Assembly (NCBI GenBank): GCA_043228905.1
Contig: JBHGNT010000008.1
Location: forward strand, 13,392,001-13,456,000
DNA length: 64,000 nucleotides
Origin: Azolla caroliniana
Lineage: Eukaryota; Plantae; Polypodiophyta
Reading direction: 5' to 3'
In this document: one piece after another, positions 1,458 through 40,397 of the stretch
Position numbering within the stretch: the first letter of the stretch is position 1
Layout: every line of letters begins with the position of its first letter
Translations under genes and position numbers: made by a program
The notes under the pieces: generated by a model
The model's input: only the letters and a program-made list of their open reading frames with translations
The model's database searches: none
Told to the model about the DNA's origin: nothing

Positions 1458-2353
1458 TGTTCAATGCGGGTCTCTAATGAACGTATTCACATTGTCTCCT
1501 TTTGTACCCACTAGGTTTAGGGTATTTATGTAAATAGTGAGAGTGGTAGTTGCCCTAAGTAAGTCAGTATATAAACTGACTTTGTAACCTAGTTTGGTGG
1601 TTGATTGATTCTGTCTCTAATTGCCATCAATCTACATTGCTTGCATCCACATATGATCCTCACATGAGGAGAGTGTTGAGATTGTTCCGTACCTAGACGG
1701 TTGCGTTCCCAACATCTTGATAGGAATTGACCAGCCACAACCAGTTGCACATTCGTATTAGGGTGTAGAAACCAAATACTAGTACACAGATAGAAAAACG
1801 CGAAGACACAGAGACACCAATATTTCACGTGGAAAACCCGAAATGGGAAAAACCACAAGGGTTTACAAACCCTGAGAAAACAGATCACTATGGTAGAGAG
1901 GAAGTACAGTACGGAACTCAGAGGGAACGACCTCAAGTTCTCGTTGTGACAAACGGCTATAGAGTTACACTCTCACTCTCTCACTCACGGTTACAGAGGC
2001 AACTACCTCGTTCTAACTTTACAATAATTGATCTACAACATAAAGTTTTCCCTAGTTGCTTATAAACAAAAACAACTTTATGGATATTTACAAGTATAGT
2101 CCCCAAGAGACATTTTAGACTATTTACAATTATAGTCTTCCGAAATGATTTCAGTTTTCGATTTCGGTTTCGGCCTCGGCCAAGTTACTCACCAACTTGG
2201 TTCTTCTCTTCCCATCCGGTGGGACTTGTATCCCAACAAACTCCCCCTTCACTCCGACATGGGGTACTTCACCAAACTGACCCTCTATCGGCACGTGTTT
2301 AGCTTTTCAGCTAACAACACCTTCGCCATCATATTGATCCATTTTCGGTTGTG

Positions 2354-2377
2354 GGGTGGAAGCACGCTACGGTGTAC
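2354..2377 (+). repeat. Left TIR of the Sola2-like element
   Basis: gggtggaagcacgctacggtgtac; inverted match to 18676-18699. Confidence 0.92.
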
Positions 2378-2899
2378 AAGAAAAGTACTGTTTTTGGTCA
2401 CAAAAATTGACAGTACTTTTGATATTGTTAGTACTGAATAATTCAAAAAAAAAAAAATCGATTTTGGAGAGTGGGGTGACTGTAGTACAAGTGTCATTTA
2501 CTACAAGGAGTGGGGGGAACACGTGAGGAGATGTTCTTTCCATTTTGGGGGCTATTTTCCCCTCACGTCGATTTTGGCGCTTCCCCTCACGTCGTTTTTG
2601 GCGGTTCCCTTCATACTCCTCTTCCTCTATCCCTTTGAACTCTTCATCTCAGACATCCATGTCACGTTTCTGCTTTTCCTCCAATCTAAGAGTTTTGTTA
2701 GGGTTTAGGGAGAAAATCTCAGACATCCATGTTAGGTTGGAGCTTTTGAGTTAAGGATTTCTGGTTTTTTTAGGGTTTAGGTTGAGGAACAGACACTGTT
2801 CTCAAGCCTCTTATAACAGCCAATAGTGACTTCTTCGACACCGACTTTCTTACTTCCTACGATTATAATTTATGTCGTGGTGATTTGGGGCTTTTTCCA

Positions 2900-3372
2900 T
2901 CGAGGCGAGGGTCCTTCCACCGAATCCAGGCGGCATATGACAAAGATTCAAGGCGCCCTCCACCATTGGAGGTTCCTTCCACTAAATCAAGGCGGCATAT
3001 CACAAAGATTCAAGGCGCCCTCCACCATTGGAGGTTCTTTCTAACAAATTGAAGCGGCATATTACACAGAATCAATGCTCCCGCCACCATTGGAGGTTCC
3101 TTGCATCCAATTTTTTATTTTCAGGACTAAAATTTTTCATTTCTTCATTTTTCATTACTAAATTTTTAGATTTTACAATTGTCAAATTTGTACGTCGTGC
3201 TTCCACCATTGGAGGTTCCTTCTAGCAAATCGAGGCAACATATCACACTGATCAACGCTCCCGCCACCATTGGAGGTTCCTTCCATCCATTTTTTTATTT
3301 TCAGGACTAAAATTTTTCATTTCTTCATTTTTCAGTACTAAATTTTTAGATTTTACAATTGTCATATTTGAT
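2900..3372. repeat. Subterminal direct repeats upstream of the transposase
   Basis: ccaccattggaggttc occurs about 5 times, and a block of roughly 140 bp is duplicated at about 180-bp spacing. Confidence 0.8.
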
Positions 3373-3518
3373 CCGTAATTCTAATGTTCGAAACAAATTA
3401 TTTCTCACTTTGCAGGCCACATTTTAAAACATTTGAATGTGTTTTCTTAGTGTAGTTTATATAACATTAACTACTCTCGCCGGACACTTAATTTTTTTGG
3501 GATAAATCTAGTGACCAA

Positions 3519-6500
3519 ATGGGGGTCCCCAACGAGAGTGAGTTGTCAAGTAACTCATGTATATCTGAAAGGACCAAGAGACGGGTGGTTCTTCACATAG
3601 TCCGTTATTTTGTAGAAATAACGAAGAGATTTAGTGAAGAGGATCGTAGGGATATTATATGTAGAGTGTTACACCATCAACGTTTGAATGAAGACATGGA
3701 GAGAATAAAATTTAGGGACCAATGTGTTTCAGAAGAGATTGTAGAGTCTATGAAGTCATCCCTAGACTTAGTGAAAGGTGTAGAGAGCATAGACAAACTT
3801 GTTGCAAAGAGGGCAACCCTACACATGGTTTTGAATGGTGCGAGAGAAAAAAAAATATAGTGATACTAAAGCTACCTTAGCCTTGGGTATTCAAAGAAGG
3901 AACTTGAGGAAACATCGCCGAAATATACACTCAAGCCAATTCAAGTGGCTGGGGTTGGGACGTAGATGACGATGAGATGCCTTATCTCAAGAGATTATTG
4001 AGAAAGTGGATTCATTTTGGGCCAAAAATATGCGTGTCTCACCAAATAAGAAGGACGTGTGTAGACAACGAATAAGTCAGGGTAAGTACCAGATTCACCC
4101 TAGACACTTCTTGGAGATGACAGAGGTATTCCATTTTTTTATATCAATTCACATTCCATAAATTTGTGTTTTGACCAAGTGTATATTAATGTTTGCTATA
4201 TATATTGGTTGATGTAGGCTGAATTGTACATGAACTTTAAAGACCAACATCCAAGCTTGACTGTTGGATTCCGCAAGTTCCAAGGTTTGAAACCATTTTA
4301 TGTTAGAAAATTAAATGAGAGGAATACATGTTGTTGTGTGTACCACGTAAAGATGAACATGTTAAGGCTAGGAGTGAATGCAATGCGTACTGATTCTAAG
4401 GGTATACACGGGGAATTATGTGTCTACACTTGTGAGGTTTGTAAACCAAATGGGGAGGATAATAGGTGTAATGCACGAAACACGACTTATGCACCCGTTT
4501 CTGAGCTATGGAGGTCTTGTGTTTGTGAAGAAGAACCATCATGTGAGTGGCATCGTCATACATGTCTATTAAGAACATGTAAGGTTTGTCCGCTACCATT
4601 ATTTTGTAGGCAGAGCTTGATTTGGGAAACAATCATATCATGAAATGGAAATATTTAGAGTATGTGACTGAAAATATTGGCAAGGGACTTGTAACTAAGC
4701 ATATCAAGGAAGTATATAAGGAGACATGTGCTGCTGCCCTTGTCTTAGAATTTAAGAAACAACTTGGGGAGTTCATTCCACATAACTTCCGGAGTTATTG
4801 GCAAAATTCACAGTTCAAGGAATGTATTAATAACTTACCAATGGGTGTCATTGTATCCGTTATTGACTTTGCAGAAAACTATACATTTAAAGTTCAAAAT
4901 GAGGTTCAATCAATGCATTGGTACAATGATCAATGTACAATACTTGTACATATTTGCTATTGGAGGCAAGACAGTGAGTTACATAAGAAATCAATATTTT
5001 ACATTTCAGATGATAAAAAGCATGATAGACTATTTGTTCAACATTGTTTTAAGCTTCACCATGCAGATTTATTGTCTCTAGGGTTAACCTTTAACCGTCA
5101 TTGGGTTTGGTCTGATGGTGCTGCCTCGCAGTTTAAGGCGGCACGATCGTTCTACTTTATCGCCAGGTAATTTTTAATCCATATGTTTAGTACTTATCAT
5201 GCAATGTGTAAGGAAGTGATTCTTGTGTTAGTGCATGCATACTAATTATGTTTGTAACTATTCACACACAGTACTATTGACATGGATGCATACTAATTAT
5301 GTTTGTAACTATTCAAACACAACACTATTCACATGGATGCATGCATACAAATTTTGTTTGTAACTAAGTTAACTGTTCTTGATTGATCAAATAGTACTAT
5401 CCTGTCATGTGAATATGTGTTTATTATCTTTTAATCCATGTGAAGTGTTCTCCATAGACAAAGTGTACTATGTTGTGTGTTGTATCTTTACTAAATTAGT
5501 ATTTACTGAAGAATGTAAAGTACTCGTACTGTACTCTATAGTATTGTCCGTCCTTAAGAGAATTGTACTAATTATCTTTAATCCATGTGAAGTGTTCTCC
5601 ATAGACACATTGTACTATGTTGTGTGTTGTATCTGTACTAAATCAGTATTTACAAAAGGATGTAAAGTACTCGTCTTGTACTCATAGTATTGTCTGTCCT
5701 TAAGAGAATTGTACTAATTATCTTTTAATCCATGTAAAGTGTTCTCCATAGACACATTGTACTATGTTGTGTGTTGTATCTGTACTATGTTGTGTTTACA
5801 GAAGGATGTAAAGTACTCGTCTTGTACTCATAGTATTGTCCATCCTTAAGAGAATTGTACTAATTATCTTTTAATCCATGTGAAGTGTTCTCCATAGACA
5901 CATCGTACTATGTTGTATGTTGTATTTGTACTAAATCAGTATTTACTGAAGGATGTAAAGTACTCGTCTTGTACTCATAGTATTGTCCGTCCTTAAGAGA
6001 ATTGTACTAATCATCTTTTAATCCATGTGAAGTGTTCTCCATAGACACATTGTACTATGTTGTGTGTTGTATCTGTATTAAATCAGTATTTACTCAACTT
6101 GTACTCATAGTATTGATCGTCCTTAAGAGAATTGTACTAATTATCTTTTAATCCATGTTGAGGGTTTTCCATGGACACTGTATTGTACTATGTGTTGTAT
6201 TTGTACTAAAGAAGTAATTATCGAAGGATGTAAAGTACATGTCTTTTACTCATAGTACTGTCCTAGATTGAAGAGTTTGTACTAATTATCTATTAATCAA
6301 TGTTGAGTGTTCTCCATGAACACACTGTATTGTACTTGGTGTTGTATCTATACTAAATCAGTAATTATCAGAAGATGTAAAGTACATGTCTTGTACTCAT
6401 AGTGCTGTCTTATATTGAAGAGTTCGTACTACTTATCTATTAATCCATGCTGAGTGTTCTCCATGAACACACTGTATTGTACTATGTGTTGTATCTATAC

Positions 6501-7847
6501 TAAATCAGTGTTTATTGGGGGATGTAAAGTACATGTGTTGTAGTACTAATTATCTTCTAAGGAGGGTTGTGTTCTCTGTGGACACATTGTAATGTATTGT
6601 GTATTGTATCTATACTAAATCAGTATTAATGAATGTAAAGTACTCGTCGTCAGCAACATAGTACTATCTGATATTGAAGAGTTTGTACTATTTATCTGTT
6701 AATTCATGTAGAGTGTTTTCCATGAATTCATTGTACTATGCTTTGTGCTGTATCCATACTAAATTAGTATTAATGGATGCCAAGTTCACATGGTTGACAA
6801 CATAGTACTATTTATCTTTTAATAAGTGTAGAGTGTTCCCAATGGATACGTTGTGCTATGCTTTATTTTGTATTTGTACTAAATCAGTATTAATGGATGT
6901 GTAGTACTCTCGATTGACAACATAGTACTAATTTTGTTGGAAACCTGAGATACAAAAGCAGGTATTTCTCCTTATTCAACATTCGTATGCAATGGAACTA
7001 CTTCGGGTTTGGACATGGAAAAGGAGAGCATGATGGCGCGTGGGCTTTGATCAAACATGCCCTTACAAGTGAGCAGTTGGATAATAATGGTGCCAAGTTA
7101 CAAAATGCACATGATGTTGTGTAGTGGCTAACATGGAAGATGTCAAATGATGGTAAGAACAGATTGTTTGTTCAAGTTCGCGCTAATGAGGTTGATAGAA
7201 CTAAATCATATGGTTGTAAAACTGTGAAAGGCACACGCAACACCCATTGTGTATTAGGGTTTAGCCGCAAGGACACAACACAATTGTTACTCCATACTTT
7301 ATCATGCTTTTGTTCCATGTGTATAGATGAAGCTTGGGATAAATGCATCAACCTATCAATCGTCGAGGCTTGGAAGCTGCAGAAGCTTGAGCCTGAATGA
7401 CAAGATGATATTGAAGAGGATGCGCATTCAAACGATATTGTATACTACAACCAACATCAAGACTTGGCAGTTTTATTGGAAGTTGGAGATCATTTTGCAG
7501 TGCTCAAATCTCCTCAGAATGAAGATTTAGAAGACTACTACATTGTGGTGTGCAAGCAAGGCAAGACATTATTGAAAGAAGTGGTGAGGGATGGCTGGGG
7601 CAACAATTTCAACCTTGGTGAGTTTGTCGTGTATGGAAACTATTATGCAAAGTTGCCGCAGTGCAAGAACACATATGCATTACTAAAAGAAGCACCGATC
7701 GCAATAATCTATGCTGATGCCATTCTTGCGATCAAATTCAATATGACTCAAGCAAAGCACAAGGTTAAGGGATACAACACTGTCTACAAGGTCCCCCAAG
7801 AGGTTCATGAGCACATATTAGGGGAGGTCTCTCTATTTAATGCTTGA
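3519..7847 (+). pseudogene. Sola2-type DDD transposase, 3 exons (3519-4125, 4218-5166, 6962-7847), disabled by frameshifts and stops
   Basis: GT-AG introns 4126-4217 and 5167-6961 join in frame (...FYFIAR|YFSLFNIRMQWNYFGFGHGKGEHDG...). Catalytic D residues lie in IDFAEN, WSDGA and HDG. Cys-rich region RNTCCCVYH...CEVC...CVC. Premature stops at about 7122 and 7398. Confidence 0.85.
5420..6930. repeat. About 147-bp tandem repeat (about 10 copies, degenerating rightward) inside transposase intron 2
   Basis: The anchor atccatg recurs at 5434, 5581, 5728, 5874, 6021, 6151 and beyond. Confidence 0.92.
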
Positions 7848-9031
7848 AAGTCACCCTATCAATACATTGTACCAGAAAACTGAAAAACACCCACTTCTAG
7901 TTCACTATTTGATGTATTGATATATTAATTTTGATGATTGACAAATGAATCGATATAATTCCTCTTTCTTCTATTATGTATTACGAATCGATATATTTGA
8001 TGTATTGAGACTATTTATTGAGCTTGTATTGTAAGTGTTTATGGTAATTATAGAGTTGCTTGTTTCCATGGTTTAAGGTGTGAAGTCTTCAATACTTCTG
8101 TATTGTTAGTGTTTATGGTAATTATAGAGTTGCTTGTTTCTATGGTTTAAGGTGTGAAGTCTTGAATACTTAGTAGGCTAAATATGGCCCAAACTTATTC
8201 AACTATCAAGTCTCTATTGTGTGCACTCAAGCCATTATTCAACTCTAACCATGTGCACTCAAGGAGACCATACTTCGCAAGTATCAATATACATATTAGT
8301 ACTAACGCAAGTATCAATATACATATTAGTTTAGTACTAATGTCAATTGCAAGTATGTCAATTGCAAGTATTAAGTAATACATAGCATTCTCCCAATGTC
8401 AATTGCAAGTATTAAGTAATACATTGTAGTCTCCCAAAGTATCTCAGTTAGACGGATACATACATCTGATGTAAAGTTCGGTTGCATGACAGTATATACC
8501 AGTCTTCTAAATCTTCATCTGGTATAACGAACTGTATATAACATCTCAGTTAACAATATAGAATTTTATTTGTAATCAACACAATCATGGCTGCATGGGA
8601 GTGTACTTGGGAGTGTGATAAATTTGTACCTTCCTCACCAAAGATCATTTCAGAATTAGCAATATAGAAATTCAGATTACACTACAAGAGTTAACAATAG
8701 AATAAATTTTCATTCTCTACAATTGGCAATATAGAATTTCACACTGGTATAACTACTAGATTTTGGTATACCAAATAGTTCAATTTCAGACATCACTAAC
8801 AGTTCAGCTAAAGTTCAAGTACAATCGAAAGACAATCGAAAGACAATCGAAAGACACTAGTATAACTATTTCAGATAAATGAGACAGTATTTTGGTATAC
8901 CAAATAGTTCAATTTCTCACATCACTAATAGTTCAGCTAAAGTTCAAGTACAATCGAAAGACAATCAGGCACTAGAGGGCAATTTGGCTGATCTTGTAAT
9001 GCGCTTGTTGTTGGTGCCAGTTTTTTTCTGA

Positions 9032-12000
9032 TTATACATTCTTCTTTATCTTAAAGCCTTTAGGTATCAGCTGACTAAGTGGCACTTCATCATCAGAGGC
9101 ATCAGAGACAAGCGTGGATGCACGGGCACCTTGTACTAGTGGCAAGCTTGAGAGACCAACTGTGTTTTCTGCAACTGCAATGCTTGTACACACATCCACA
9201 AAGGTGCTGTCGATAGAAAAATTATCACTCATCTCCTAAATGTGGGTTGTTTTAGTACTCATGTTGTTGATAGTATGCTCAGTCTCAGTACAATTAGGCT
9301 CCTGTATGTGGGCTACAACAATACTCCTAGCGAACTCTTGGCTGGTCATAGTCACCTCATTCTTAAGACCATTGTGCTCTCCTTCTTGGTTCAACTCCTC
9401 TTGTACGGTGGCTATCACCTCATTCTTAAGAGAACCGTGTTCCCCTTCTTCGGTGGTCTTTATTGCCTGGTCCTCATGGGTGATGCTAGTAGGCTCCCCT
9501 TCATTAGTAACGATGTTCTTTCCACAATCCTCATGGGATTCTTTAGACATTACTAGCACATTCTCAGTACAATCAGGCTCCTCTTCAGTACTAGCAATGT
9601 TCTTTCCACAATCCTCATGGGATTCTTTAGACACTACAGATACATTCTCAGTACAATCAGTCTTCTCTTCAGTACTTGCCATATTCTTTCCACACTCCTC
9701 ATGGGCTTCTTTAGACAAATTATTGTTTGTACATGCTAGCTGCTCTTCAAATATGAATGCTTCGTTTTTCTCACAGTCCTCATGTGTGGAAGATGTGCTT
9801 CCAGAGTCTGCCTCCGTGAAAAGGTTAATCCCAAAATCTGACTTTGCACTTGTGCTCCATATAGTTCTCGATTCATTTGATTGCAATTGGGAATCAGACT
9901 GCTCTTGTAAACCTAAATAATGGGATTCCAAAGAATATTAGTATCAACTCACATACTCAAAAGTTTGCAAACATACCAACAACAATGAACGTAGGGTTAA
10001 GAGCCACTTTTTTACCTATTGTTACATCGTCATACTGTACAGCCGTAGATACCCCATTGCAAGTGGTAGGCTCGGTCATCTTCTCCACAACATCTAAGTG
10101 CTCAACAGGGTTGTTATGATCTATAAAATGCACCAAAAGCAACACTATCATAGGGTTGTTATGATCTAAATCATTGTTTTCAAAAACCGGCTTTTGACGT
10201 GTACCTGGGAGTGTGATAAATTCGTCTTCACGATTAGGTTTTGGACTCGTATCTCCCTCACCAAAGATCATTTCGTCATCAGCTAGTAACACAAGTACAT
10301 GGTATTAGACAATGCATTAAGTTGACAACTCTCCGGATAGGTGAGAACATATATGACTCACCATTGCATTCAACTTTGCCTTTCTTGCCCTTTCCATACA
10401 ACATTCTTGCAACATTCCTCTTCTTAGTTGGCTCTATTTCTAAAGAAATTAGGCATTCAACACTTTCTCAAATGAGAATTAAGATATGTTGGCAAAATTT
10501 GTGTTACCTGAATTGTTTTGATGTTGATTGGAGCTTGGGGAATTTGTTTGTAGAAGCATATGTTCCTCTGCTCCAATGGCCCTTCTCATACCTTCATCTT
10601 CATCATAAAACTCATAGGTTATTGGTAATGATGCTCCCTGAACCTTGGAATATTCAGCAAATACCGAGGGTTTAGGCATAGGGGCTGGTTGTTCCATTAC
10701 CTTCCCTGGTGTGGAGTTGCTTGACACTACAACATTCATTGCAAGAAACCAAAAAACCTTCAAGATTAGTACCGTGATATAAAATATACAATGTAGGTCA
10801 CAAGAGCTGCATTACTAATTCATTAAGCTACACCTAGTTCCCAATTTACACAAGTAGTACTAATCATGAACAATGTACTACTCACTTAGTTCCCAATTTA
10901 CACAAGTAGTACTAATCATGAACAATGTACCACTCACATAGTTGCCAAATTACACAAATAGTACTAATCATGAACAATGTACTAATCCTGAACAATATAC
11001 TATTCACTTAGTTCCTAAATTACTGAACTAGTACTAATAAGGAACAGAAGTAGTACTAATAATGAACAATGTATTGCTCACTTAGTTCCCAATTTACACA
11101 AGTAGTACTAATCATGCACAATGCACTACTCACTTAGTTCCCAAATTACACAAGGAGTACTAATCCTGAACAATGTACTACTCACTTAGTTCCCAAATTA
11201 CAAAACTAGTACTAATCATGAGCAATGTACTACTCACTTAGTTCCCAATTTACAAAACTAGTACTAATCATGAGCAATGTACTACTCACTTAGTTCCCAA
11301 TTTACAAAACTAGTACTAATCATGAACAATGTACTACTCGCTAAGTACTAATTGTCAACAATGTACAAGTATAGTGTGTACTAACACTAGTATTAGGCAC
11401 GTTGTAATATAGATTGGACTAACATCTAATCCAACAAATGTAGATTGGATTTTAGTACTAACGTGGTATTTTGCACACAAGTAATACTAAACGTGATATG
11501 TGTTCTACACACTAATTGCATAACTTGTACTAATTACACCAACAATATTAATCTTGAATAGTATTAGTACTAAACGTGATATGTGTTTGACACACCTCAT
11601 TTCCAAATTACACAAACTGTACTAATATTCAACAATTTACTATACACCTTGTTCCCAAATTACATAACTAGTACTAATTCCCAAGTTACACAAACAATAC
11701 TAACAGTCAATAGTGTACTACAAGTATAGTGTCTACTAAACTAGTACTAGGCAAGTTGCAATATAGATTGGACGATGCTGTACCTGGCTCCCTTTTAGTA
11801 CTAATTTTGGAAAATATCCCTTCAACTACACATACCAATTATATATTAAGAGTACTGCCAATACTAACCCACATAATTAGGGTTCCACATATTAGTTGTT
11901 AGAGATACACTAATACTAATCCATTACTCTCCTAAATTTGAAGTATGAATTGTGGCGTACACTAGTTCTAATCCAAATGTAAATTGACATCATATAATAC

Positions 12001-13360
12001 AAACAATAGAATAGTAGAGCCACATACCGTACGGGTGTACTTTTAAACCCCAAGCATAGTACCACTCAGCTGCAATTGTAGTTTTACAGTCCATACATGT
12101 ATTCTCTTTCTCAAAATGATACTTAGCACATAACACATGATATGTGTGCAAACACGGTGTAATCACAACATCCATAGCCTCCAGCTTGAATCTGAGGCCA
12201 CAAAATATACACTTGGCAGATTGCAAACACAAGTTATAATATATTAGCTAATATGATATTTATACCACAGAAGTAGAAATAAATAACTTTTAAAGCCAAT
12301 ACCGTGATATAGCTATACTAGTAATGGTACTTTCCATACCACTTGGGTGCTCAATTACAAATAGACACAAAGTTTCAAAACCTTTTTGTTTTAAATCTTG
12401 CATCAAGCACGCAAGGTTCTCGGAATGCAACTTTAAAGCTGACAACTTATTATCTATTTCGGAATGTGCATTCCAGCAAGTATCAAGGTCTCTCATATGT
12501 GAACCTAATTGAGTGCCCATATTGTTTAGCTCTTTCTTCAACTCCTCTTTCAACACCTCACTTTCTGAATTTTGGATTGTCAATGCAATCCATTCATATG
12601 TAGTCTTTAATGAAGAGAATTTCTTTTCTGCTTGTATCTCAGCTGATTTAACTGCTTCCAAATCAACAAGTAGTTCTTGTATTCTTGAGCTCATAGATGC
12701 TATGCAATTGGCCATCATCTGTTCATTCTTTTCAGTCATTGTGAACCGTACCTTTGCAGATTGAACTTGGTGGACATGTGTTGTAGCCGGAATATCCACA
12801 TGAGAGGTTCCTGATGACTTCAAGCTAGTGTTGGTATTGGAGAACCCTTTATAATGTTATGACTGGTGCCGATTAAAATCTTCCCAATCTACGTCGATGC
12901 CACCCTGGACTTCACATGCAAATGCACGTGCAAAAACAGTACCCACCTCATTGTTACAGATTTGATTTGTATCATAAACATGTTCATATCTCGTATTCAA
13001 TAAGTTCACATATTCCCTCTTCAATCCACTTATGTGGAATCCTCGCCTTGTATCGGGATGTGCTGACCCCCAGGTTTTTATCAACCACTCTCTTAGCTCA
13101 GGATAAACTTCAGGTCGTGCTCGAAGGAAATAACTCAATCCGAGAGGTGTGTCTCGAATGAGGGAGTGGTACATCTTCTTTCTCTGTGTTGATGAATTCA
13201 TCACCCTTTCTCTTGTGGGTGTCTTCTTGCTTTCTTTGAGAGGTGTCCTTTTTCCTTCCTTCAATGGTGTCTTCACTTTCTCTTTCATCAATGTCTTCTT
13301 TATGGGTGTCCTTCTCGTCATTGTCCTAGTCATCACTATTCTTGTTGAATGAATATGCAT
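9032..13360 (-). pseudogene. Multi-exon accessory gene: basic N-terminus, coiled coil, RING-H2 finger, acidic repeat tail
   Basis: Exons at about 13360-12303, about 12248-12028, 10726-10508, 10439-10362, 10282-9977 and 9912-9032. The last five join in frame through four phase-1 GT-AG introns; the first junction is not resolved. RING-H2 C-x2-C-x15-C-x-H-x2-H-x2-C-x10-C-x2-C at about 12086-12211. In-frame stops at 12857 and 9236. A possible upstream exon lies at about 13822-13897. Confidence 0.8.
10830..11800. repeat. 52-bp tandem repeat (degenerating) inside the large intron of the RING gene
   Basis: Unit tagtactaatcatgaacaatgtactactcacttagttcccaatttacacaag, with anchors at 11207, 11259 and 11311. 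Confidence 0.9.
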
Positions 13361-14249
13361 GTACTAGAATAAAAATCATCAAATTACCATCAACACATAG
13401 CAAATCATCACATTGCATGTACAAGCCATGTCAAACAGACAAAAACCCTAAATAGTCGGAAGAAAACTCATCTATGTCTAACACATACAAATTAAAAACA
13501 GACAAACAGCAAACAACAAACACAGAGAAAACGAAAACATACCAACAAAACGAAAACATAGCAACTCAGCATAGCCAACTCCATCTAAGTTGCATGTACA
13601 AACCATGTCAAACACGCAACCACCCTAAACAGTCAGAAGAAAATTCATCCATGTCAAACACATACAAATTAAAAACAGAGATACAGGAAACACAGAGAAA
13701 ATGAAAACATACTAGTTGGGCATGCAACTCATAGACTATGAATAATCAAAACCGAAAAATGCCCATACACATACAAATTAAAAACAGACAGATAGGAAAC
13801 AAAGAGAAAATGATAACATACCAGTTGGAGGCAGATGGAGCCAAGGTCGAAGGTAGAGGTACCACACCTTCAGAGCACACCAAGACGTCAAAATCACCTA
13901 TATGCAAGAGGTTGTTGACGAGGCTGTTGCAGAGGAGACAAACGAGCATTAACAGAGGAGACAAACGAGCATACACAAGGAAAGAAAATCAACAACAAGA
14001 ACATCAATCCGGGGAAACAGAAATCTCTGCATATACAGAGACAGAGATTGAACCTGGCACAGAGGGGAACACAACAACAACTACGCGGGGAAACAGAGAA
14101 TCAAAGGTGGAGTGAGAGAGAGAAACAAAAAGAAAGAAAGAAACAGAGATTCAAAGGTGGAGTGAGAGAGAGAAAGAGAGAGATAGGTAATAGATATGTG
14201 TCGTCTTTCTAACTTTCTGCCTCTATCTATGTGACAACTTCGAGACAAA

Positions 14250-14280
<31 letters not shown>

Positions 14281-14448
14281 AAGAAAGAAAGATATATTAA
14301 CGTCTTCTAAGGCCAAATTTGGCCCATGAGACAAATAGGTTACAACAAAAGATGAGTGTTTATCCAATCATCAAAACTAAAAATAAAAGAAAATAGCTTA
14401 AGCTAAGAAAGTTCTAGTAGTGTACAAAACTTTGCACCAAGCCTAATC

Positions 14449-17400
14449 TCATTTCCACCCAAGTCTCTCAAAAAGAAGTGGGAGGTCAAAAGTTTTTGGT
14501 GTGGGTGTGACCCATGGTCCCGATGCATAGAGTGCCCTAGCCATGGCTTCTAGGCGGTGTAGTTCACGTTCCCTTATTTTCTTTATTGCTTCTACATCTC
14601 GTCGAGTTGCTTTGAAACCCGGCATCCGAGGGCGTTTGGTTCTTCTTTGATTTTCTGCTTCATCAAGGAGAAGTCCGAGTGGTACAGGTGTGTCGACATT
14701 CATTGTCTCCCCCTGTTCCTGAAAAACTTCATTTGTTATATGTTGGTAAACATTAGCAACATTATTATCAACGTTTTGTAATTTGTTCTCTCTGTGGTGT
14801 TTCAATTCTAAGATGTATCTACCTAATTTCTTTATATCTAGTGTATCTAATAGTTTAGGGAGGGTGGGAGAGGAACCAAGTATGTCTTGGTATTTTGCCC
14901 TTATCTCGGCATAGGTGGGGCATTTGCATGTAAAATGGTACTCATCCTCTATCTCTATGTGGCATAACCTACATATCCTTTCCTCCCTAGGGACTCCATT
15001 AGTACGTCCATTCTCAATCTCAAGTTGGTGAGATGATATTCTAAGTTGACCAATGGCAACCCTTAGTGCATGTGGTAAGAATACATCTAGATATTTTGGG
15101 CGCGTGATAAAACCTAACTCAGAGAAGTGCATAAAGTGTTCTTTATAGTACGACATTTTAGATGGGAGTGGCTCTAGTGGGGTGATCCATTTATACCGGG
15201 TATAAATTTGCCATATTTCTTGGCGTATTACTTTATTACGGTCCTCATGAGAGAGTAAAGTGTTATCATTCGTGTGGTCGTACTTAAGGGGGGGGAGGTT
15301 AGTAATGTCTAGACCGTTGGCAAGAAGCCAACTCACCATCATGCCATACCATGAGCTAGTATAGCCGGACTCATACAATGCTCGAGAAGCCTTAAAGGCT
15401 TGGTGGGATATTCTATCAAGTGGTTGGTTATGTATCCTGTGTATAAAGACTACCAGTTGAAAAAGTGCTTCTACTAACATAGGGGGTAGAGTGAACTCAG
15501 CCCTAATAATGTCATGTGGGACCGACGATTTGCTTCGGAGTTGGCGTGATAACATCATCACCAATGGTCTCTCTAATTGCGTCCACATGAAAGATGGTAG
15601 TCCTGGGGCCCAAACCGCTGATGCATACATGAGAGAGGGAGTCACTAATGAGTCAAAGAGCCACCCTTTAGTTCGTGGCTCTTGGAAGTATGCTTGGTGG
15701 CATTGTCTCTCGAGGAGTGAGAGGGATGCATGTCCTCTTGTAAGTCTATCCTTCGCTGCTTGTGTCATCGAAAATTTACCTGAGCGGGCACTGAAAGTGA
15801 CTCCGAGATAGACATATGATCCAACCACCTCAACTGGGCTATGGGAGATAGTTAGGTGACACTTAGCCCTAACTTGGGCCGACGTGTGGAAGATAAGGAC
15901 TTTAGTTTTCCCTAGATTCACTACCAATCCTCGTTGTGTGCAAAAGTCATCTAAGGCATTAAGGTGCCTTTGTAGGTCGTGTTCGGATTCAGAGAGCAAA
16001 ACTATGTCATCTGCATAGAGCAAGATACGCACCTGCGTATCTCCAAGGACTACTCCATTGCCTCCCTTACGAGCAATAAAATCTGTGATCTCATCAATGT
16101 AGATCCCAAAAAGAGTCGGAGATAAGGGGCAACCTTGTTTTACACCAATAGTGCTAGTGAAACTATCGGATATGCCGCCTGGGCATCGAACACACCCAGA
16201 CACTTGTTCATATAGTGCGTAGATGGCCCAAACCATGTCATCTGGTATCCTCAAGCTCTTAAGCCTATCAAACAACCGCTCTCTAGGGACCGTGTCAAAG
16301 GCTTTGCGGAAGTCCACAAAACAACAATATAGTTTCTTCTTGCGAGCCTTAGTCTGGTCAATTAAGCATCTAAGTGTGAAGATATGGTCAATAGTGGAGA
16401 AGGCTCGTCTAAAGCCGGCCTGTTCAGGTGCACGAAGATTTAAGGTCTCCATATACTCGCTAAGCTCTGCCTCCATTACTGCACCATATAATTTAGCAAG
16501 GGTATGACCTATCATAATGGTCCTATAAGTATTTGGGTCCATGGGGTCCCCCCCCTTATGTATGGGGGCCACTGTGTTCATGGTCCATTGTGATGGAAAA
16601 CCCTCTGCAAGGGCACGATTGAAGATTAGAGTTAGTAAGGGAGCTAGGCACTCTCTCGCGTATATGATGTGTTCTGCTCGCAACCCTGTGTGGTCCATGG
16701 ACTTCCTATGTTGTAATTTCTTTATGACCTTCGTGACCCTAGAGGTTGTGAAGAGTGTCCCCACAGTAGGTCGGGGTGTGGAAGGCATTGGAATGGGTGG
16801 TTGGTTTGGGATGTGGTAAAGTCTCTCTGTATAAGTGTGCCAAGTTTCGGGATCTTCGATGGGTGTTTGTGGTCTTGGTTCCCGTAATCTCTTCCATGCA
16901 GTGGCACAATCGTTACTCATGAGCATGTGGTAGAGTTCCCAATATTGGGATGCCTCCCATGCTCGTCTCTTACGACGTGTCATCTTGCGCATTTCTTTAC
17001 GAGCTTGTACTGAGGTAATACTACCACTGAGTTGCGATATTGTAAGTTGTCGATGTAAGCACCTACAATCCTCATCATACCATCTATTTTGTGGCATAGA
17101 TCCTACTTTACCTTGATTGGAGTGTTTCGTGTATGGGAAGCTGCTAACCGCTGCAGAATGAAGGATGTGTGTGAGTTTCGTATTAAGGCTCTCTAAAGGT
17201 AGGGAGGGATCAAGGGAGGAGAGATGGGCTTGAACATGTCGAGCATATATGTCAGAGAGCTCATGTGTGAAATGTATTGTGATGTCATGGCGTGGTTGAC
17301 TAGAGTTGGTGACGTTAGAGATATCGCATTTTATCTCGAAGTATAAGAAACTATGGTCCGCGCCAATAGGACATGGGGTCACTCGGAAGGAGTTAATCAT

Positions 17401-18192
17401 GTGGGTGGCTTCAGGGCGTCCTATTAGATAATCGACTGTGCTTTCCCCTCCTCCATGTGGGAAACATGTGAGCTCTTCCGAACCTGGCCACTTGGCTAAA
17501 CCATTATATATGACCATCTGGTGCCGACTACCGAGTTCGAGCAAATGATGGCCAAAGCTCGTGGCGTCTGCACCTTGATCCTTTGATTTACGTGTGGTGT
17601 CTATGTCTGAAGGATCGACATTTACCATTTCTAGGTTTCTATTCATTTGAAATATTGTGCATTGTCGGGATTGGGTTCTCGCATTAAAGTCTCCTACAAG
17701 GAATACTTCGCCTTGGGAAGAATATCGGATTATGTCATCCGATAGAGGTTCATATGGGGAAGGCCCATGTGGCACTCCGTCATCAACTGATCTCGCCTCG
17801 CCAGCCAGATTATAACGAGAGCCTTTTGGGGGGAAGTAACAAATGGCGAAAATTACTGCCTTGTCCTTGCTTGTGGAGACTTTCACCCACATAAAACGAG
17901 CTTCTGGGTCAGTGCTCAGTATTTCTATCCTATTATGTAGCTCCCTCCGAAACAATATTGCGACACCTCCAGATCCCCTGGTAGTGCATCGACGTGAGGT
18001 TTGTCTAAAAGCCGACTCCCAACGAAATCCTTCGACTCGTGGGAGTCCCCTATTTGGGCTTTGGTGTGTTTCTACTAGGCAAACTATATCTGATTCCTTT
18101 AATATCCCCTCTAGGCGGCCGGGGTGTGTCCAGAGTGCGCCGTTACAATTCCATAAGGTCATCCTAAGTGTGTTTTCTGTCACATGGGCCAC
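14449..18192 (-). CDS. LINE ORF2: AP endonuclease, reverse transcriptase and C-terminal zinc finger (1247 aa, intact)
   Basis: APE motifs WNCNG, ETH, GDFNART, VDY, DH. RT motifs DFRKAFD, GVKQGCPLSP, YADD. C-terminal LRISSHQLEIENGR...CRLC..EDEYHFTCKC. Confidence 0.95.
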   Translation of the reverse strand: MAHVTENTLRMTLWNCNGALWTHPGRLEGILKESDIVCLVETHQSPNRGLPRVEGFRWESAFRQTSRRCTTRGSGGVAILFRRELHNRIEILSTDPEARFMWVKVSTSKDKAVIFAICYFPPKGSRYNLAGEARSVDDGVPHGPSPYEPLSDDIIRYSSQGEVFLVGDFNARTQSRQCTIFQMNRNLEMVNVDPSDIDTTRKSKDQGADATSFGHHLLELGSRHQMVIYNGLAKWPGSEELTCFPHGGGESTVDYLIGRPEATHMINSFRVTPCPIGADHSFLYFEIKCDISNVTNSSQPRHDITIHFTHELSDIYARHVQAHLSSLDPSLPLESLNTKLTHILHSAAVSSFPYTKHSNQGKVGSMPQNRWYDEDCRCLHRQLTISQLSGSITSVQARKEMRKMTRRKRRAWEASQYWELYHMLMSNDCATAWKRLREPRPQTPIEDPETWHTYTERLYHIPNQPPIPMPSTPRPTVGTLFTTSRVTKVIKKLQHRKSMDHTGLRAEHIIYARECLAPLLTLIFNRALAEGFPSQWTMNTVAPIHKGGDPMDPNTYRTIMIGHTLAKLYGAVMEAELSEYMETLNLRAPEQAGFRRAFSTIDHIFTLRCLIDQTKARKKKLYCCFVDFRKAFDTVPRERLFDRLKSLRIPDDMVWAIYALYEQVSGCVRCPGGISDSFTSTIGVKQGCPLSPTLFGIYIDEITDFIARKGGNGVVLGDTQVRILLYADDIVLLSESEHDLQRHLNALDDFCTQRGLVVNLGKTKVLIFHTSAQVRAKCHLTISHSPVEVVGSYVYLGVTFSARSGKFSMTQAAKDRLTRGHASLSLLERQCHQAYFQEPRTKGWLFDSLVTPSLMYASAVWAPGLPSFMWTQLERPLVMMLSRQLRSKSSVPHDIIRAEFTLPPMLVEALFQLVVFIHRIHNQPLDRISHQAFKASRALYESGYTSSWYGMMVSWLLANGLDITNLPPLKYDHTNDNTLLSHEDRNKVIRQEIWQIYTRYKWITPLEPLPSKMSYYKEHFMHFSELGFITRPKYLDVFLPHALRVAIGQLRISSHQLEIENGRTNGVPREERICRLCHIEIEDEYHFTCKCPTYAEIRAKYQDILGSSPTLPKLLDTLDIKKLGRYILELKHHRENKLQNVDNNVANVYQHITNEVFQEQGETMNVDTPVPLGLLLDEAENQRRTKRPRMPGFKATRRDVEAIKKIRERELHRLEAMARALYASGPWVTPTPKTFDLPLLFERLGWK

Positions 18193-18198
18193 ACGCCG

Positions 18199-18411
18199 TC
18201 AATTAGTAGTGCGATCATTTATGATCACTCGCCCATCTCGATAAAAGGCGCGATGCCCGTCTTTGCGAGCTTGCATAACCTTTGGCATACAACTCTTGCG
18301 ATGCTCAATTTGCATCTTGGTGAGGTCTTCATCGAGATAGATAGGGTCCCCACCCAATCCTCGAAGAATTGGTCTCTTCTTAAAGAAAGTGATTCTAGAG
18401 TCTAAGTCTTT
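18199..18411 (-). pseudogene. LINE ORF1 C-terminal remnant
   Basis: PIYLDEDLTKMQIEHRK...AFYRDGRVIIN resembles LINE ORF1 C-termini; it is in the same frame as ORF2. Confidence 0.7.
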
Positions 18412-18675
18412 AAAGAGAGAGAGAGGGAGAGAGAAAGAGAGACTGACCAACTATCACATTCCAAACCTTCTCCAGGTGTGCTTTCGTACAACTCTACCTA
18501 GGAGAATGAAGTTACAATTAATGTATTAAATACGGCCTTGGGACATTTCGAGTGTGACGTAATGAATTTGTTATTTGAAATTGAACACCATTCAATAGAT
18601 GATAATTGTTTTATTTTCAATTTTTAATGTTTATTTTCTTCCTCGATTTAGTACTAAATTTTTGGCCAAAAGTTG

Positions 18676-18699
18676 GTACACCGTAGCATGCTTCGACCC
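18676..18699 (-). repeat. Right TIR of the Sola2-like element
   Basis: gtacaccgtagcatgcttcgaccc, followed by TSD tgtg. Confidence 0.92.
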
Positions 18700-21600
18700 T
18701 GTGTGAATCTTCACTAGAGCAAACTCCTTTTCTTCTAGTTTCTCTCGGGGCCAATGATATCTTCTCTAGATGTGTTTGAACCTAGAGTGGTAGGCAGAAT
18801 TTTTTGCAAGGTGGATGACACTCTGGTTATCGCAATGGAGTTGGAATTCCTCCTACTGAATTCCCAGCTCACCGAAAAATTCCTTCATCCATATGATTTC
18901 CTTTCCGGCTTCGAGTGTGGCCATATATTCAGCTTCCGTGGGCAATAGTGCCACGACCTTTTGCAACCTTGACTGCATTGAAACAACTCCCCTTGCATAA
19001 GTCATTACATACTTGAACGTGGATCAGCTAGTATCCACATCAGTCAACATGTCCGAGTCAGTATAACCTTTCAGTGTGGGGTTACCTGAACCGAAACGAA
19101 GACACACGTACGAGGTGCCTTTTAGGTATTGAACTATCCAGTTCAGGCCATCCCAATGCTCTCTTCCGGGGTTGCTCATATATCGGTTAACCACGCCGAC
19201 TGTGTATCCTATGTCCGGCTTGGTCCATACCATTACATACATCAGGCTTCCAACCGTTGAGGCATAAGGGACTTTTGACATCTTGGCTTTCTCGATTTTC
19301 GATTTCGGACATTGTTCTTTGCTTAGCTTGCAGTTCATTGGCAATGTCGAGTCGACTGGTTTCGCGCTTTCCATGCCGAATCTTTGGAACACCTCTGTCA
19401 CGTATTTTTTCTTGTGACAGCCACAACAATTTCTTTGTTCGATCCCGAACAATGTGCATCCCCATGATTTGCTTTGCTGGACTCATATCCTTCATTGAGA
19501 ACGATCTTGTCAAGGCTTTCTTCACCAGTCGGATCTTCGTATGGTTCCGTCCGACAATCAGCATGTTGTCAATGTACAATTGGAGGATGAGGAAATCTCC
19601 TCGATCGAATTTCTTCACAAATATGCAGTGATTGGGCTACGTTTAGTGGTACCCGTTGTCGATCATGAAGGATTCGAATTTTCGGTACCATTACCGAGGA
19701 GCTTGCTTCAATCCGTACAAGCTCTTCCTCAATCGACACACCAGATTTTCTTTACCTTTTTCCACAAATCCTTTCAGCTAGTGCATATATATCTCTTCTT
19801 CCAAATCTCCATGGAGGATGGCAGTCTTGACGTCCAGTTGTTCGACTTCGAGATTGATGTTGTCCGCGATGCTCAGCACAGTTTAGATTGATGTCATCTT
19901 TATGACTGGGGCAAATATTTCGCCGAAATCAACACCCTTCTTCTGTAGAAAGCCTTTCACGACGATTTGTGTTTTGTACGTGGGTGGATTCCCGCCATCT
20001 CCTGGTTTTAACTTGTATACGCATTTATTCCGAAGTGCCTTCTTTCCTCTCGGCAGTTCCGTCAGTTCATATGTGTGGTTCTCATGCAAGGAATCCATGT
20101 CCTCTTGCATGGCACTCAACCACTTTCGGTTGTGGGTATCTTCCTTAGCTTCTTCAAAGCTTTCCGGCTCCCCCTCATCGGTTAGCAGTACACACTCTTC
20201 ATCTGGAAATCTTCGGGGGGCCCTCCTTTCTCTTAGGGGGTATCTTCGGCCTCCATTCGGCACTGTCGGTTCTTCTTCGACTTCTTCGGCCGATTCAAAT
20301 TCAGTTCCTTGTTCAGCCGTTTCCCCTCGTTCTTCAGTCAGTTTTCGATTTTGCCGAGTATTAACTCGGTCGACTGGCTCAGATTTGATTTCAATCGAAT
20401 CGGCTTCTACTCGATTCAGCCGAGCATCCACGCGATTCGATTCGGTAGTTGGAGACATATTCTCAATCTCCCAGTCGACTATTGTCTTTTCCTCCATGAA
20501 GACAATGTCGCGGCTCCTAATCACTTTCTTCTCGGCTAAGTCCCATAGCCGATAGCCAAATTAATCATTGCCATTGCCAAAAAATATGCATGGCCGAGAT
20601 TTCGGGTCCAACTTCCCCCCCTTTGCTCCTTTGCCACATGCACATAAGCAAGACAGGCGAACACCCTCAAATGTCGGTACGATACGTCTTTGCCACTCCA
20701 CAACGTTTGTGGAATATCATTGTCCACGGGTACTGAGGGTGATCGGTTTTATCACGTACGCTACCGTCATCAACGCCTCAGTCTAGAACATCTTCGGTAA
20801 CTTAGCATGTGCAAACATACATTAGACCCTTTCCATTACGATCCGGTTCATTCTCTCGGCCAACCCATTAAGCACTGGTGTCTTCGACATGGTATACTTG
20901 AGCCGAATTCCTTGATTTCGGCAGTATTCCTCAAACGGTCCACCAAACTCTCTGCCATTGTCCGCTAGGACTGCCTTTAGTTTTCGTCCGGTTTCTCTCT
21001 CGGCCCTCGCTTGGAACTCTTTGGAGATGGATAACACTTGATCCTTCGTCTTTTGCATGGAAACTTCTGGCTATAGTCATCAATGAAGGTCACGAAATAC
21101 TGTGAACCACCATGTCACTTCATGTCCACATAGCATACATCCGTATGCACGAGTTCCAACGGCATTTTCTTCCTCATTGGGAGCCTTGTTCGGAAGGATG
21201 TTTGATTCTGTTTACTAGCCAAGTAGACAATGCACTTCTAAAGTTGCACCTTCTACACCTCCGGAATGAGGTTGTCCTCGGCAAGCTTTCGCATCCCCTT
21301 TTAGCTCATATGGCACAACCTCCTGTGCCACAGTTCACCGACCGTGTCAGCTGCCACGTTTGCTTCCCCTTAGCATATTCGAGCATTCATTATGTACAGT
21401 GTGTTGGTTTTCCGGGCTTGAGCCACCAGCAAACTTCCCTTGCAGAACATCATGACACCGTTCTGGATGCTACCCGTGTAGCCTTCATCATCTAACCGAC
21501 TAGCTGATATTAGGTTCAATCGAACATCCGAAATGTGTCGTACATCTCTCAACACGAGTCTGAACCCGATTGAGGTTTCCAAACACACATCACCAATGAT

Positions 21601-32717: not shown

Positions 32718-35649
32718 TAAAGAGTTTTGAGTCTCGGTTGTGGTCGAGCGCTATTCCTCATAGATGTGTAGGAGAACGATGTGAAGATTCTGCAGAAAGA
32801 GAGCTCAAGAAAAGGGCAATCAAGAGCAAGAACCCTTTTTGGAAGTGAAGATGGAGATCTCATGCGGTGTTGTCCGGACTACCCAAGGAGTCGACCACAC
32901 TCTTATGTTTACCCGTAACAGGTTTATTTGTTCTGTGGTTTTTTTGAGTTTCTTCTTGTTATTCATTTCACATGTTAGGGTGAATATTGTAACCAAGGTT
33001 GTAGCCTTGAAATATGTGTGTATGCCTCTAAAGTGTTAGCTCTAGAGGCTGTCAACACCTCGTATACTCAGAAAATAGTGAATCTGTTTCAAAACCTAAG
33101 GTTCCCGTGGTTTTTCCCATTTTTGGGTTTTCCACGTTAAATCTCGGTGTACTCTCATTTTTTTCTTGTGGTTTCATCTATTTGGAATTTGGTGTTGGTA
33201 GTGCAAATAATCCCGATTCAGATCCATATTCCCATTAAGTGGTATCAGAGGTGAGGTTCATACCCTCCACAAAGATTTACTATATGGATGAATCATTAGG
33301 CGGGATGATTAAGTTGACCGGACCCAACTACTCCATTTGGAAATCCAAAATGAGAGACATGTTGGTGTATAAGGACATGTGGTTGCCCGCACGACATGGT
33401 GCAAGCAAACCTGAGAACATAGATGCATCACCTTCGGAAGCAATGCATCTAAAAACAACATCATACATAGGTTGTTTTATAGACATGAGTCTATATAACA
33501 ATTTCGATGATCAAACCAAAGCACACGAATTATGGGGGAAAATCGAAACCATGTTTTAGACCAAAAAGACCTTAAATAGAGTGTCTATGTTTAGGAAACT
33601 TGCAAGACTTAGATACTGTGAATGTTAATGTGCAGAAGCGTCAGACAGGACCGGCTCAGCCGGATAGCAACAGAAAATGAGATGAAGGTTTAATGGAAAA
33701 TCTTAAAACATAGAGGAGACAGAGAGAGCAGAACATAAAACTATATTAAAAAATTAACTCTAAAAACTCTGTACATACAATGTGCTAAACAACATTATTT
33801 ATACAAGTCCATAAAGGATTGACAGGTACTTCAATGCTCACGCGTGCGATTGACACTAACTACGAGACAACGATTACCTAGTAGTTTAGGCTACAACTAG
33901 GCTTCCAGTTCCCGCTCGAATCTGGCTCTCTGATCCGGCCGGTTGTTTCCAAATACCATTTGGATACCATCCGGATACCGATCCGGTTCATCCTTCCGGA
34001 TGCCGATCCGGCTCAGGCTTATTCAACTGATCCGGATCCGGTTGAGCTTCCTCGCTCAACACTCCCCCTCAAGCTCAACTTGAGATCGAATCGTGGTGTT
34101 GGTGTCCGTGGCAGCCGGTTCTTCTACCCGGCTCCTTTTGGCGTTGCTTCCCCTCACTCGCGTTCCGCGTTCAGTCCGGTCTTGTTTGCCATGACCCTTC
34201 TGGTTCTGCGCGCCTCGACCTCCTTGGTCGTCTTGTCTGCTCAACATGCCTATTTCAGCTCCCTCGCTGATGTGACTCCGACGCTTGTCGACCTGTCAGT
34301 TCCTTCATGTTGGCATCGACTTCCGGTGTGTCCATGTCCACTTGGCCTTTAGTTGATCCAACTTCTCCGAATCATGAACTGAATCAGGTTCCTTCGATTT
34401 GTTCCAGCTCTTGTCTGAGTCGGTGTTCTCCAACTTGTCTTCCGGTTTCAAGCCCTTCACCACATTGGACCACATTCGGGTCTTGGCCGTTTTCTTCCAG
34501 TCGGCTTTGTCCTTCTTGACTCTGTCGCCGCTACCGCTTGTTCCGACCTTTTCGGATGTGCCGACTCCTTCGGTCAGCTCGGCTTCCTTTTTCCTCTTGT
34601 CTCCCCCTTTGTTGGTTCTTTCTTCCTATCCGACTCCTTGTCCGGTGCCATCCATTCCCTTTCTTTTTCTCCCCCTCAAGTGCGGCACATCCAGATGTTG
34701 AACACTAAGCATTTCGGTGAAGTGCTGCAACTTGTTTGATCCAAGAGGTTTGGTGAAGATATCGGCAATCTGTCGATCTGTCTAAACATACCAAAGTTCC
34801 ACTTCACCGCTCAAAACTCGCTCATGCACAAAGTGATAGTGAACTTCGATGTGCTTCGTCCGAGCACGGAACACGGGGTTCTTGGCGAGTTCAATGCTGC
34901 TCATGTTGTTACAATAGAGCGGGTTCGGAAACTGCAACAGTCACCGAAGCCAGATTGGTTCACATGTGGCACTGGTAGCGCCCCAGTATTCAGCCTTAGT
35001 GCTCAACAGAGCCACTGTTGGCTGCTTTTTGCTCCTCCATGCAACAGCCACGCTACCCAAAGAAAACATGTAACCGTAGGTGGATTGACGATCCGATGCA
35101 TCACCAACCCAGTTGGCATCGGTATATCCGACTAGCTTCCCAGCTATACCGTGTCGGTATAACAATCCTTAATCCTTCGTGCCGCTAACATACTGTCAGG
35201 AATAGTACTAAAGCAGAGATGGAATTAGTACTAAGAAGAGCAGTACTATTAGTACTAAGAGGACGGGACTGCGTAAGATTCCCGAGAGAGGAAGTGAGAA
35301 GAGGAGAGAGAGAGATAGCGAGGATGAGAGAGAGAGAAAGATGATGACAACAACTAATATATTATGTGAAATGATAAGTACAAAGCGGCTGAGAGGCTTA
35401 AGACTGGCGTTGAACCAATTTGGTTCAACATAATGCTTAGTGCCTTCTTTTATAGTGTTGTCAGGAGTAATCCTAAAACTTCTAGAATGTTCCAGAGAAA
35501 TCTGGAATATACATTACTTTCTTATAATAAAACATAAATGAAAATAAAATCCTATGAATTACAATAGATGGTGTGATGGTTAAGAGCTCAACCCATATAC
35601 CATAAGGTCATGGGTTCCAGTCTTGCCATATCATGACACTATCTCCCCC

Positions 35650-38600: not shown

Positions 38601-39188
38601 AGTTGTACTGAGGAGTCCTTCTTAATAGTGCTTGAAGGATGTACTGATATTGCAAATAGGAACCTCCTTGTGTGCTTCTTCGCGTAATTGATGGAGTGAA
38701 ATGGTCGAAACTCGGTGAGTAGATTCTTGGGGTGGTCGATATCAGACTTCTCTTGTTCTCCAATCTATGGCTGGATTATGTAATTCAAACCAAGGTAATC
38801 CTAGGACAATGGGATGCTCTGGACTACTAATTATATTAAATGATATTACACACACAAAACTACCTAGGACAACTTGAATGGGTTCTGATTCTTCTACAAT
38901 ATTCCCGGAAGCAATGGGACGACCATCAATGACCACTACAGATGCGGGACAAGGAAGTTTCCTTAGGGATATCTGAGAAGCTTGGGCAAAATTTCGATCC
39001 ATCAAACAGGAATTAGCTCCGGAATCTAAGAGTGCTAGGACGGGTACTGGGGGAGTACTTTTAGTACTAACAATGACTTGGGCTAGGAACACATTGCTAA
39101 CTTGCTTGGAAGGAATGGAACCACTAATGGGCTGTACAGATCTAGGGTTGTTGTCCAACCAAACGGCTCCTATTTTGGATGGACTCAA
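35650..39188 (-). pseudogene. pol: Pol of chromovirus H (PR, RT, RH, INT, chromodomain), frameshifted
   Basis: LLDSGA, WKTAFRT...YPDD, ADASD, DFITDLP...SDRG, YEVVAILDS...YLVDWLGY...TWEP. Confidence 0.9.
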
Positions 39189-39197
39189 TCGTTTAAC
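39153..39197 (-). promoter_or_regulatory. Predicted -1 ribosomal frameshift signal at the gag-pol junction of H
   Basis: G TTA AAC heptamer, 6-nt spacer, then an 11-bp stem with one mismatch (GTCCATCCAAA/TTTGGTTGGAC). The -1 frame is the protease ORF. Confidence 0.72.
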
Positions 39198-40147: not shown

Positions 40148-40397
40148 TGCTGCTTCGAGTTGTTGTACTCGTAATGCTTACTCCCCATGTTGTTGTTGCG
40201 TTTGTTGTTTTTCGAGAGCGATTTGTTGCAGATCCCCTATCAACCGTTGATTTTCTTGTTCCAGGGCAACAAACTTTTCTTTTAGGCACTGTAACTCAGA
40301 GAAAACGGATTGATATTCTTGGGCACTAACAGTAGCCATAGTATAGGGAAAAGGGTAGGAAGAGGAGGGAGAACGACAAGTAGGCTGGTGGAAAGAA

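Follow-up and report, generated by a model that had tools for sequence, protein, structure and literature searches.

Among plant transposons, sequence-specific anti-silencing proteins have been proven mainly for the VANDAL Mutators of dicots. In these elements the VANC proteins bind dense motifs of intronic tandem repeats and possess repeat-rich variable regions, the motif of VANC21 being YAGTATTAY (PMC5735166); both VANC and Athila-domain proteins have been predicted to form coiled-coil pentamers (PMC13547354). Here we describe an element with a similar construction from the fern Azolla caroliniana, lying at positions 2354-18699 of a 64,000-nucleotide stretch (GenBank assembly GCA_043228905.1, contig JBHGNT010000008.1, positions 13,392,001 to 13,456,000, forward strand), hereafter the window. 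It is almost certainly a decayed copy of a high-copy fern family of Sola2-type cut-and-paste transposons, whose autonomous form has two convergent genes, one for the transposase and one for an accessory protein, and GTAC-dense introns.

The element is built like a VANDAL but is not a member of the VANDAL/VANC system. Like VANDAL elements, it has an accessory gene beside the transposase, a product with a coiled coil and a repeat-rich variable region, and a short, subgroup-specific motif that is dense in non-coding intronic tandem repeats which themselves turn over. Unlike them, it has a Sola-type core and a target-site duplication (TSD) of 4 bp in place of a Mutator transposase and a long TSD. 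Searches of Pfam and the PDB gave no DUF1985/PMD match for its accessory protein, the top match in the Atlas of structural models being Transposase_32, and the protein has added RING and phosphatase-like domains. Its motif has a GTAC core, is often palindromic, differs from YAGTATTAY and is also enriched in an unrelated Gypsy element; its anti-silencing role, finally, is a putative one.

Among Sola elements, which are listed for fern genomes (PMC6890710) and for moss too and for which a 4-bp TSD is a defining trait (PMC10741241), passenger genes have precedents: Fanzor1 in Sola2 elements (PMC3627910) and a ParB-methyltransferase gene in Sola1-1_Ec32 of Ectocarpus (PMC12477816). The premise of the initial annotation that Sola elements are mostly transposase-only is thus wrong. 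The Sola2 elements DFa-2 and PPa-1 share with ours the 4-bp TSD, short terminal inverted repeats (TIRs), a DDD core with the same motif order and the possession of passengers. They differ in that the passenger here is a convergent gene with N-domain, coiled coil, RING-H2 and pseudo-phosphatase regions, retained across clades, in the presence here of motif-rich introns, and in our TSDs (TGTG, GCAT), which are not of the AWWT type. Sola1-1_Ec32 is likewise a large Sola element with an opposite-strand second gene, proposed to modify the element's own DNA, but its ParB-methyltransferase domain is not present here. Our literature searches returned no description of this gene layout or these arrays.

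Anatomy of the two-gene element

The TIRs of 24 bp match in 22 of 24 bases, start with GGG and end with GTAC, and a TGTG duplication lies on either side, which bears out the GGG-ended TIRs and 4-bp TSD first proposed. The insertion point is certain because the two flanks together read as one single Copia RNase H frame, which runs on across both of them; the surroundings within the window are nested plant retrotransposons. Bao et al. in 2009 are said to have described Sola2, reportedly with a rule of 5'-GRG termini. GGG ends are seen in the window element and in a related locus, L008 (loci are denoted by L and a number), and the PPa elements classed as Sola2 begin differently.

The spliced DDD transposase that had been claimed is present, with three exons, GT-AG introns and all three aspartate motifs of the core; in this copy two stops and two frameshifts interrupt it. 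At another insertion site, L001 (95% identical) has open transposase frames across the part covered. Searches of both genes took their exons one at a time, and in Pfam the transposase gave zero family matches, as is usual for Sola (PMC5751038). By an unscored reading by eye, the DFa-2 and PPa-1 transposases (PMC3627910) show the same motifs in the same order, NxT-CxxC-H, DFxEN, SDG-xx-FK and HGK-xx-D. In these motifs the transposase resembles the published Sola2 enzymes, and the element is probably a Sola2 member.

The second gene has seven minus-strand exons of consistent phase, convergent to the transposase, with five GT-AG introns in phase 1. Its coiled coil, RING-H2 and acidic tail and its convergent orientation were all recovered as initially annotated; the description 'properly spliced' is true of the family and false for the window copy, because the acceptor of the RING exon reads AA (AG in the sister locus L011) and three stops, at 12859, 9238 and 9034, break the frame. 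The RING is a complete C3H2C3 type (PF13639, E 1.1e-5, 26 bits, just below the cut-off), with eight ligands present in the window and L006 and a D replacing the first H in L004; by this ligand pattern the protein is a putative RING-H2 E3 ubiquitin ligase. The acidic tail derives from subfamily-specific coding tandem repeats (84 bp at window 9491-9717; 87 bp at L008 12465-12854), varying between subfamilies as the variable regions of VANC do. The N-domain has invariant W, VY, N, E and F residues, and its clades were linked by a profile search where pairwise BLAST could not link them. Most fern relatives further possess a NIF/FCP1-like domain (PF03031, E 3.4e-14), absent from the window copy; in contrast to the FCP1/SCP phosphatases, these relatives lack the catalytic DxDxT motif, with LYVNG (L006) and DFNEV (L004) at that site.

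Retention of the accessory gene across the family

The convergent layout of transposase and accessory gene recurs in L004, L006, L008, L009, L010 and L013-L016 (six other loci or locus groups). These span three clades whose transposases are 30-78% identical; the transposase tree, built from unnamed homologues only and midpoint-rooted, is used descriptively. The closest named relatives are in the assemblies of Adiantum nelumboides and A. capillus-veneris. L008 is a complete element of 9,977 bp that has both genes, shares the TIR and shows a GCAT/ACAT duplication, and L009 (394-9215) is a natural second-clade copy with no stop in the transposase and accessory exons read. A TIR search in L005, L006 and L010 found none within the flanks retrieved. 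In three DNA sequencing runs, all bins, starting at the end of the transposase and including the second gene, were covered by 1,100-2,000 variant contigs; hence the two-gene form is a high-copy family.

The ratio of nonsynonymous to synonymous substitution rates (dN/dS) between subfamilies ranged in the accessory gene over 0.16-0.48 (N-domain), 0.24-0.59 (coiled coil), 0.25-0.52 (RING) and 0.30-0.38 (phosphatase-like part), and in the transposase over 0.10-0.24. Close dead copies give values approaching 1, and several distant pairs are saturated. The accessory gene belongs to the family and has long been kept, by this measure under purifying selection. The expectation that the RING gene travels with the transposase holds in sister and distant copies of three clades, and the dN/dS check that had been suggested (0.16-0.59 over N-domain, coiled coil and RING) points to purifying selection. 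A one-off capture of a host gene is ruled out because the gene recurs with the transposase across clades and dN/dS lies below 1 between subfamilies.

The intronic arrays and their GTAC motif

The transposase intron has an array of period 147 (5423-6930) and the RING intron one of period 52 (10831-11346), between which blastn finds zero similarity. Both are enriched in GTACTA/TAGTAC, often as the palindrome TAGTACTA; the word occurs 35 times in the transposase intron (expected 3.4) and 40 times in the RING intron (expected 3.9). AGTACT occurs 14 times in the first array and 17 times in the second (expected 1.6 and 1.7). GTACTA/TAGTAC is not above chance in the exons or in a long interspersed nuclear element (LINE) nested in the element. 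The claim of two arrays of unrelated period sharing an AGTACT-type motif is therefore upheld; of the motif set proposed with it, AGTACT/GTACTA is strongly enriched and AGTATT modestly so. Identity with the VANC21 motif is rejected, since YAGTATTAY is unenriched.

The introns of L006 and L008, of which the one in the transposase gene lies at the same site, are rich in the same word, so that the predicted enrichment extends to other copies. The window arrays cannot be aligned with these equivalent introns; the motif therefore stayed while the surrounding sequence turned over. Among the tandem units the GTAC columns are about half as variable as the rest (p 0.04 and 0.07; the units are non-independent). 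These observations bear on a reading in which neutral satellite turnover produced the arrays and the second gene is an unlinked passenger. Tandem amplification can multiply any word, and conservation of the motif within the arrays is borderline, but unrelated arrays in two introns and several subfamilies converge on one core and the accessory gene is under purifying selection, so that we hold such an origin to be highly improbable.

The flanks of the core vary by clade, GTACTA being typical of the window clade and AGGTAC, AGTACC or AAGTAC of the second clade, whose N-domain is of the other type and whose arrays occupy different introns. From this one contrast, the clade-specific flanks match what co-evolution of a protein with its target predicts. 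Each of the two introns of L009 abounds in a word of its own, AGGTAC/TACCTA in one and AGGTGG/CACCTA in the other.

As had been noted at the outset, the motif also stands beside both TIRs, with AGTACT at 2384, 2412 and 2430 on the left and at 18650 on the right. In CACTA elements, subterminal repeats serve as binding sites of the transposase. The motif could accordingly be the transposase's own site, placed near the ends and inside for transpososome assembly or auto-regulation: both TIRs end in GTAC, AGTACT lies 30-80 bp from each end, and the motif flanks track the transposase clades too. The dense arrays, however, are 3-8 kb from the ends, a single AGTACT is found near the right end, and both the accessory gene and the enrichment in a Gypsy element (discussed below) would be left unexplained; we regard this alternative as improbable.

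Features and state of the window copy

The coordinates of the features are collected in Table 1. The window copy is dead, with frameshifts, stops, a lost splice acceptor and a LINE inside. The LINE, about 4.1 kb long, separates the accessory gene from the right TIR and has a short open reading frame (ORF) upstream of its main frame. It is younger than the element, the sister L003 spanning the region from TIR to second gene without it; with the LINE subtracted, the element proper measures about 12.2 kb.

Table 1. Features of the Sola2-type element and its borders (window coordinates; RT, reverse transcriptase)
Feature	Position	Strand	Remarks
Left TSD, TGTG	2350..2353	.	within Copia RNase H frame
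Left TIR, 24 bp, GGG start, GTAC end	2354..2377	+	identical TIR type in L001, L007, L008
62/180-bp repeats 5' of transposase	2907..3370	.	differ among copies; GTAC not abundant
Transposase exon 1	3519..4125	+	frameshift in A-run near 3850-3857; frame open in L001
Transposase exon 2: Cys-rich region, first D (DFAEN), second D (SDG)	4218..5166	+	frameshift near 4606
Transposase intron 2 with 147-bp array, five GTAC per unit	5167..6961	+	motif-rich intron at same site in L006, L008
Transposase exon 3: third D (HGKGEHD), C-terminal domain	6962..7847	+	stops near 7122 and 7398
Accessory exon 7: acidic tail, 84-bp coding repeats	8972..9912	-	stops 9238, 9034; other copies differ at 9034
Accessory exons 3-6 (10726-10508, 10439-10362, 10282-10205, 10120-10016)	10016..10726	-	all phase 1, GT-AG
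Accessory intron 2 with 52-bp array; 14 TAGTACTA	10727..12027	-	
Accessory exon 2: RING-H2, eight ligands	12028..12212	-	acceptor mutated in window copy
Accessory exon 1: basic leader, conserved N-domain of ~110 aa, coiled coil	12303..13360	-	stop at 12859
Nested LINE within GA microsatellite; open 1247-aa endonuclease-RT frame 18192-14449	14293..18413	-	foreign to Sola2 family
Right TIR	18676..18699	-	AGTACT at 18650 just inside
Right TSD, TGTG	18700..18703	.	

Elsewhere in the window, the Gypsy element at 35196-40860 is a complete-looking long terminal repeat (LTR) element that has an excess of GTACTA in both LTRs and the coding region and no accessory gene, and four 410-bp tandem units, 97% alike, lie inside an LTR-type element at 42033-43668. 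In the third clade, L013 (604-3416 and 8079-12306) has a gene with N-domain, coiled coil and RING-like region, and a weak PDZ-like piece at 8079-8300; in all four contigs, CACTA genes (Transposase_21, DUF4218, DUF4216) directly precede the Sola2 transposase. L005, a relative in which no accessory gene was detected, has a 179-bp hairpin, 92% complementary, within a transposase intron (8613-8987). In L012, from Klebsormidium, the region 3' of the transposase (10411-12385) has short repeats rich in CTTAAT/ATTAAG together with a near-palindromic repeat of 17-29 bp.

A possible anti-silencing function

The VANDAL-like architecture is real, because the RING gene accompanies the transposase in sister and distant copies and evolves under constraint, other copies show enrichment of the motif as well, and the transposase resembles Sola2 enzymes; further support comes from the fold match of the N-domain and from the motif flanks, which differ by clade. 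The original proposal of the same architecture in an unrelated superfamily thus stands for the layout, the travelling gene and the motif arrays; the motif itself, however, is not that of VANC21, is not private to the element and is absent from one gene-bearing clade. By analogy, the accessory protein is a candidate self-maintenance factor counteracting silencing, the leading reading though one somewhat less likely than not. Its N-domain, with a predicted helical fold as in other plant transposon accessory proteins, would bind the motif arrays; the coiled coil would form a multimer and so limit binding to dense arrays; the RING-H2 would ubiquitinate a host silencing factor or a histone at the arrays; and the pseudo-phosphatase would be an optional binding module. 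Family members would in consequence remain transcribable, and the Gypsy element would be a free rider on the motif.

The fold match concerns Transposase_32 (PF20167), a domain related to Athila ORF1 (PMC11728184). The N-domain model (predicted local distance difference test, pLDDT, 82) has as its top Atlas match a cluster carrying this domain, with template-modelling (TM) scores of 0.55/0.50 over 103 aligned residues (next match 0.42/0.18); this is a single, moderate, model-to-model match, and PF20167 occurs in only 12% of that cluster. Athila-type accessory ORFs have in common with the protein this best structural match (TM 0.55) and a helical domain followed by a coiled coil; they differ in being LTR retrotransposon genes (PMC11728184), and the N-domain here has no Pfam sequence match. 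Myb/SANT-like Atlas feature rows for the N-domain (0.81-0.85) are within chance and were not used.

Several results besides the modesty of this match weigh against an anti-silencing role. The N-domain has no match in Pfam, nor in the PDB whether searched by sequence or by structure. YAGTATTAY has 0 and 1 matches in the two arrays, and the contrast in motif flanks amounts to one comparison. The accessory gene was not found in the retrieved DNA of L005 or of L012, which have more distant transposases, and GTAC arrays are missing from the L013 clade, where the gene is present. The unrelated Gypsy element has 10 TAGTACTA in 5.7 kb, with none in 34 kb of other DNA. RNA support was not found: none of the sequencing runs containing the family is recorded as RNA, and one presumed RNA run yielded contigs without splice joints; P0104-P0106, considered as spliced transcripts, were rejected, being gene models of a genome assembly and not evidence of expression. 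The motif, lastly, coincides with sites of host SPL/SBP factors.

This last point has its own explanatory reach. GTAC is the core of every SPL binding site; the preferred sites are GTACTA/GC and A/TGTACT/A for SPL7 and GTACTAC/GTAGTAC for wheat SPLs (PMC9516184, PMC11429892). The arrays could then serve host SPL/SBP factors as docking sites, through which a life stage or copper shortage would activate the element, and the accessory protein would have another task, for instance setting the abundance of the transposase or of some host protein by ubiquitination. The array motif fits the SPL7 and wheat SPL sites: WGTACW occurs 21-24 times per kb in the arrays against about once per kb elsewhere, 11 GTACTRC lie in the intron with the 52-bp array, and from clade to clade the flanks vary around an unchanging GTAC core. 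Enrichment in a Gypsy element without accessory gene, and retention of the gene without arrays in the L013 clade, would also be expected. Yet GTACG, favoured by most Arabidopsis SPLs, is scarce, the arrays are intronic and kilobases away from both promoters, the GTAC sites of L009 are not flanked by A/T on both sides, WGTACW occurring there 1.1 times per kb, and the literature searched yielded no site preferences for fern SPLs. We consider such host switching possible, though on the unlikely side.

Sharing of the motif with the Gypsy element would likewise be accounted for if an amino-DNA methyltransferase, provided in trans by related Sola-like elements, targeted the palindromes and so marked the elements as self. 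Bacterial N4-cytosine methylases recognise AGTACT and GTAC. The ParB-methyltransferase gene of the published Sola1 element (PMC12477816) offers a precedent; however, the window element has no methyltransferase, and the clade II motifs are non-palindromic beyond GTAC; we hold this explanation to be very improbable.

Significance

L009, a natural copy with open frames, makes the anti-silencing and SPL readings testable. Should SPL factors prove to be responsible, two unrelated transposon classes would have come by convergence to share a single developmental or copper switch. If instead the accessory protein is an anti-silencing factor, a conserved gene combining DNA binding and a ligase, with its own arrays, in fern Sola2 elements would represent a second origin of such anti-silencing. 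In its most far-reaching form, which we think unlikely, non-seed plants would carry an old, independent, sequence-specific Sola2 anti-silencing system, in which a multimeric Transposase_32/VANC-like DNA-binding domain fused to a ubiquitin ligase co-evolves with intronic arrays, and which would be so effective that a Gypsy element copied the motif to ride along. An anti-silencing factor of this kind might furnish a new targeted epigenome tool, and it would help to explain the persistence of transposons in the huge genomes of ferns.

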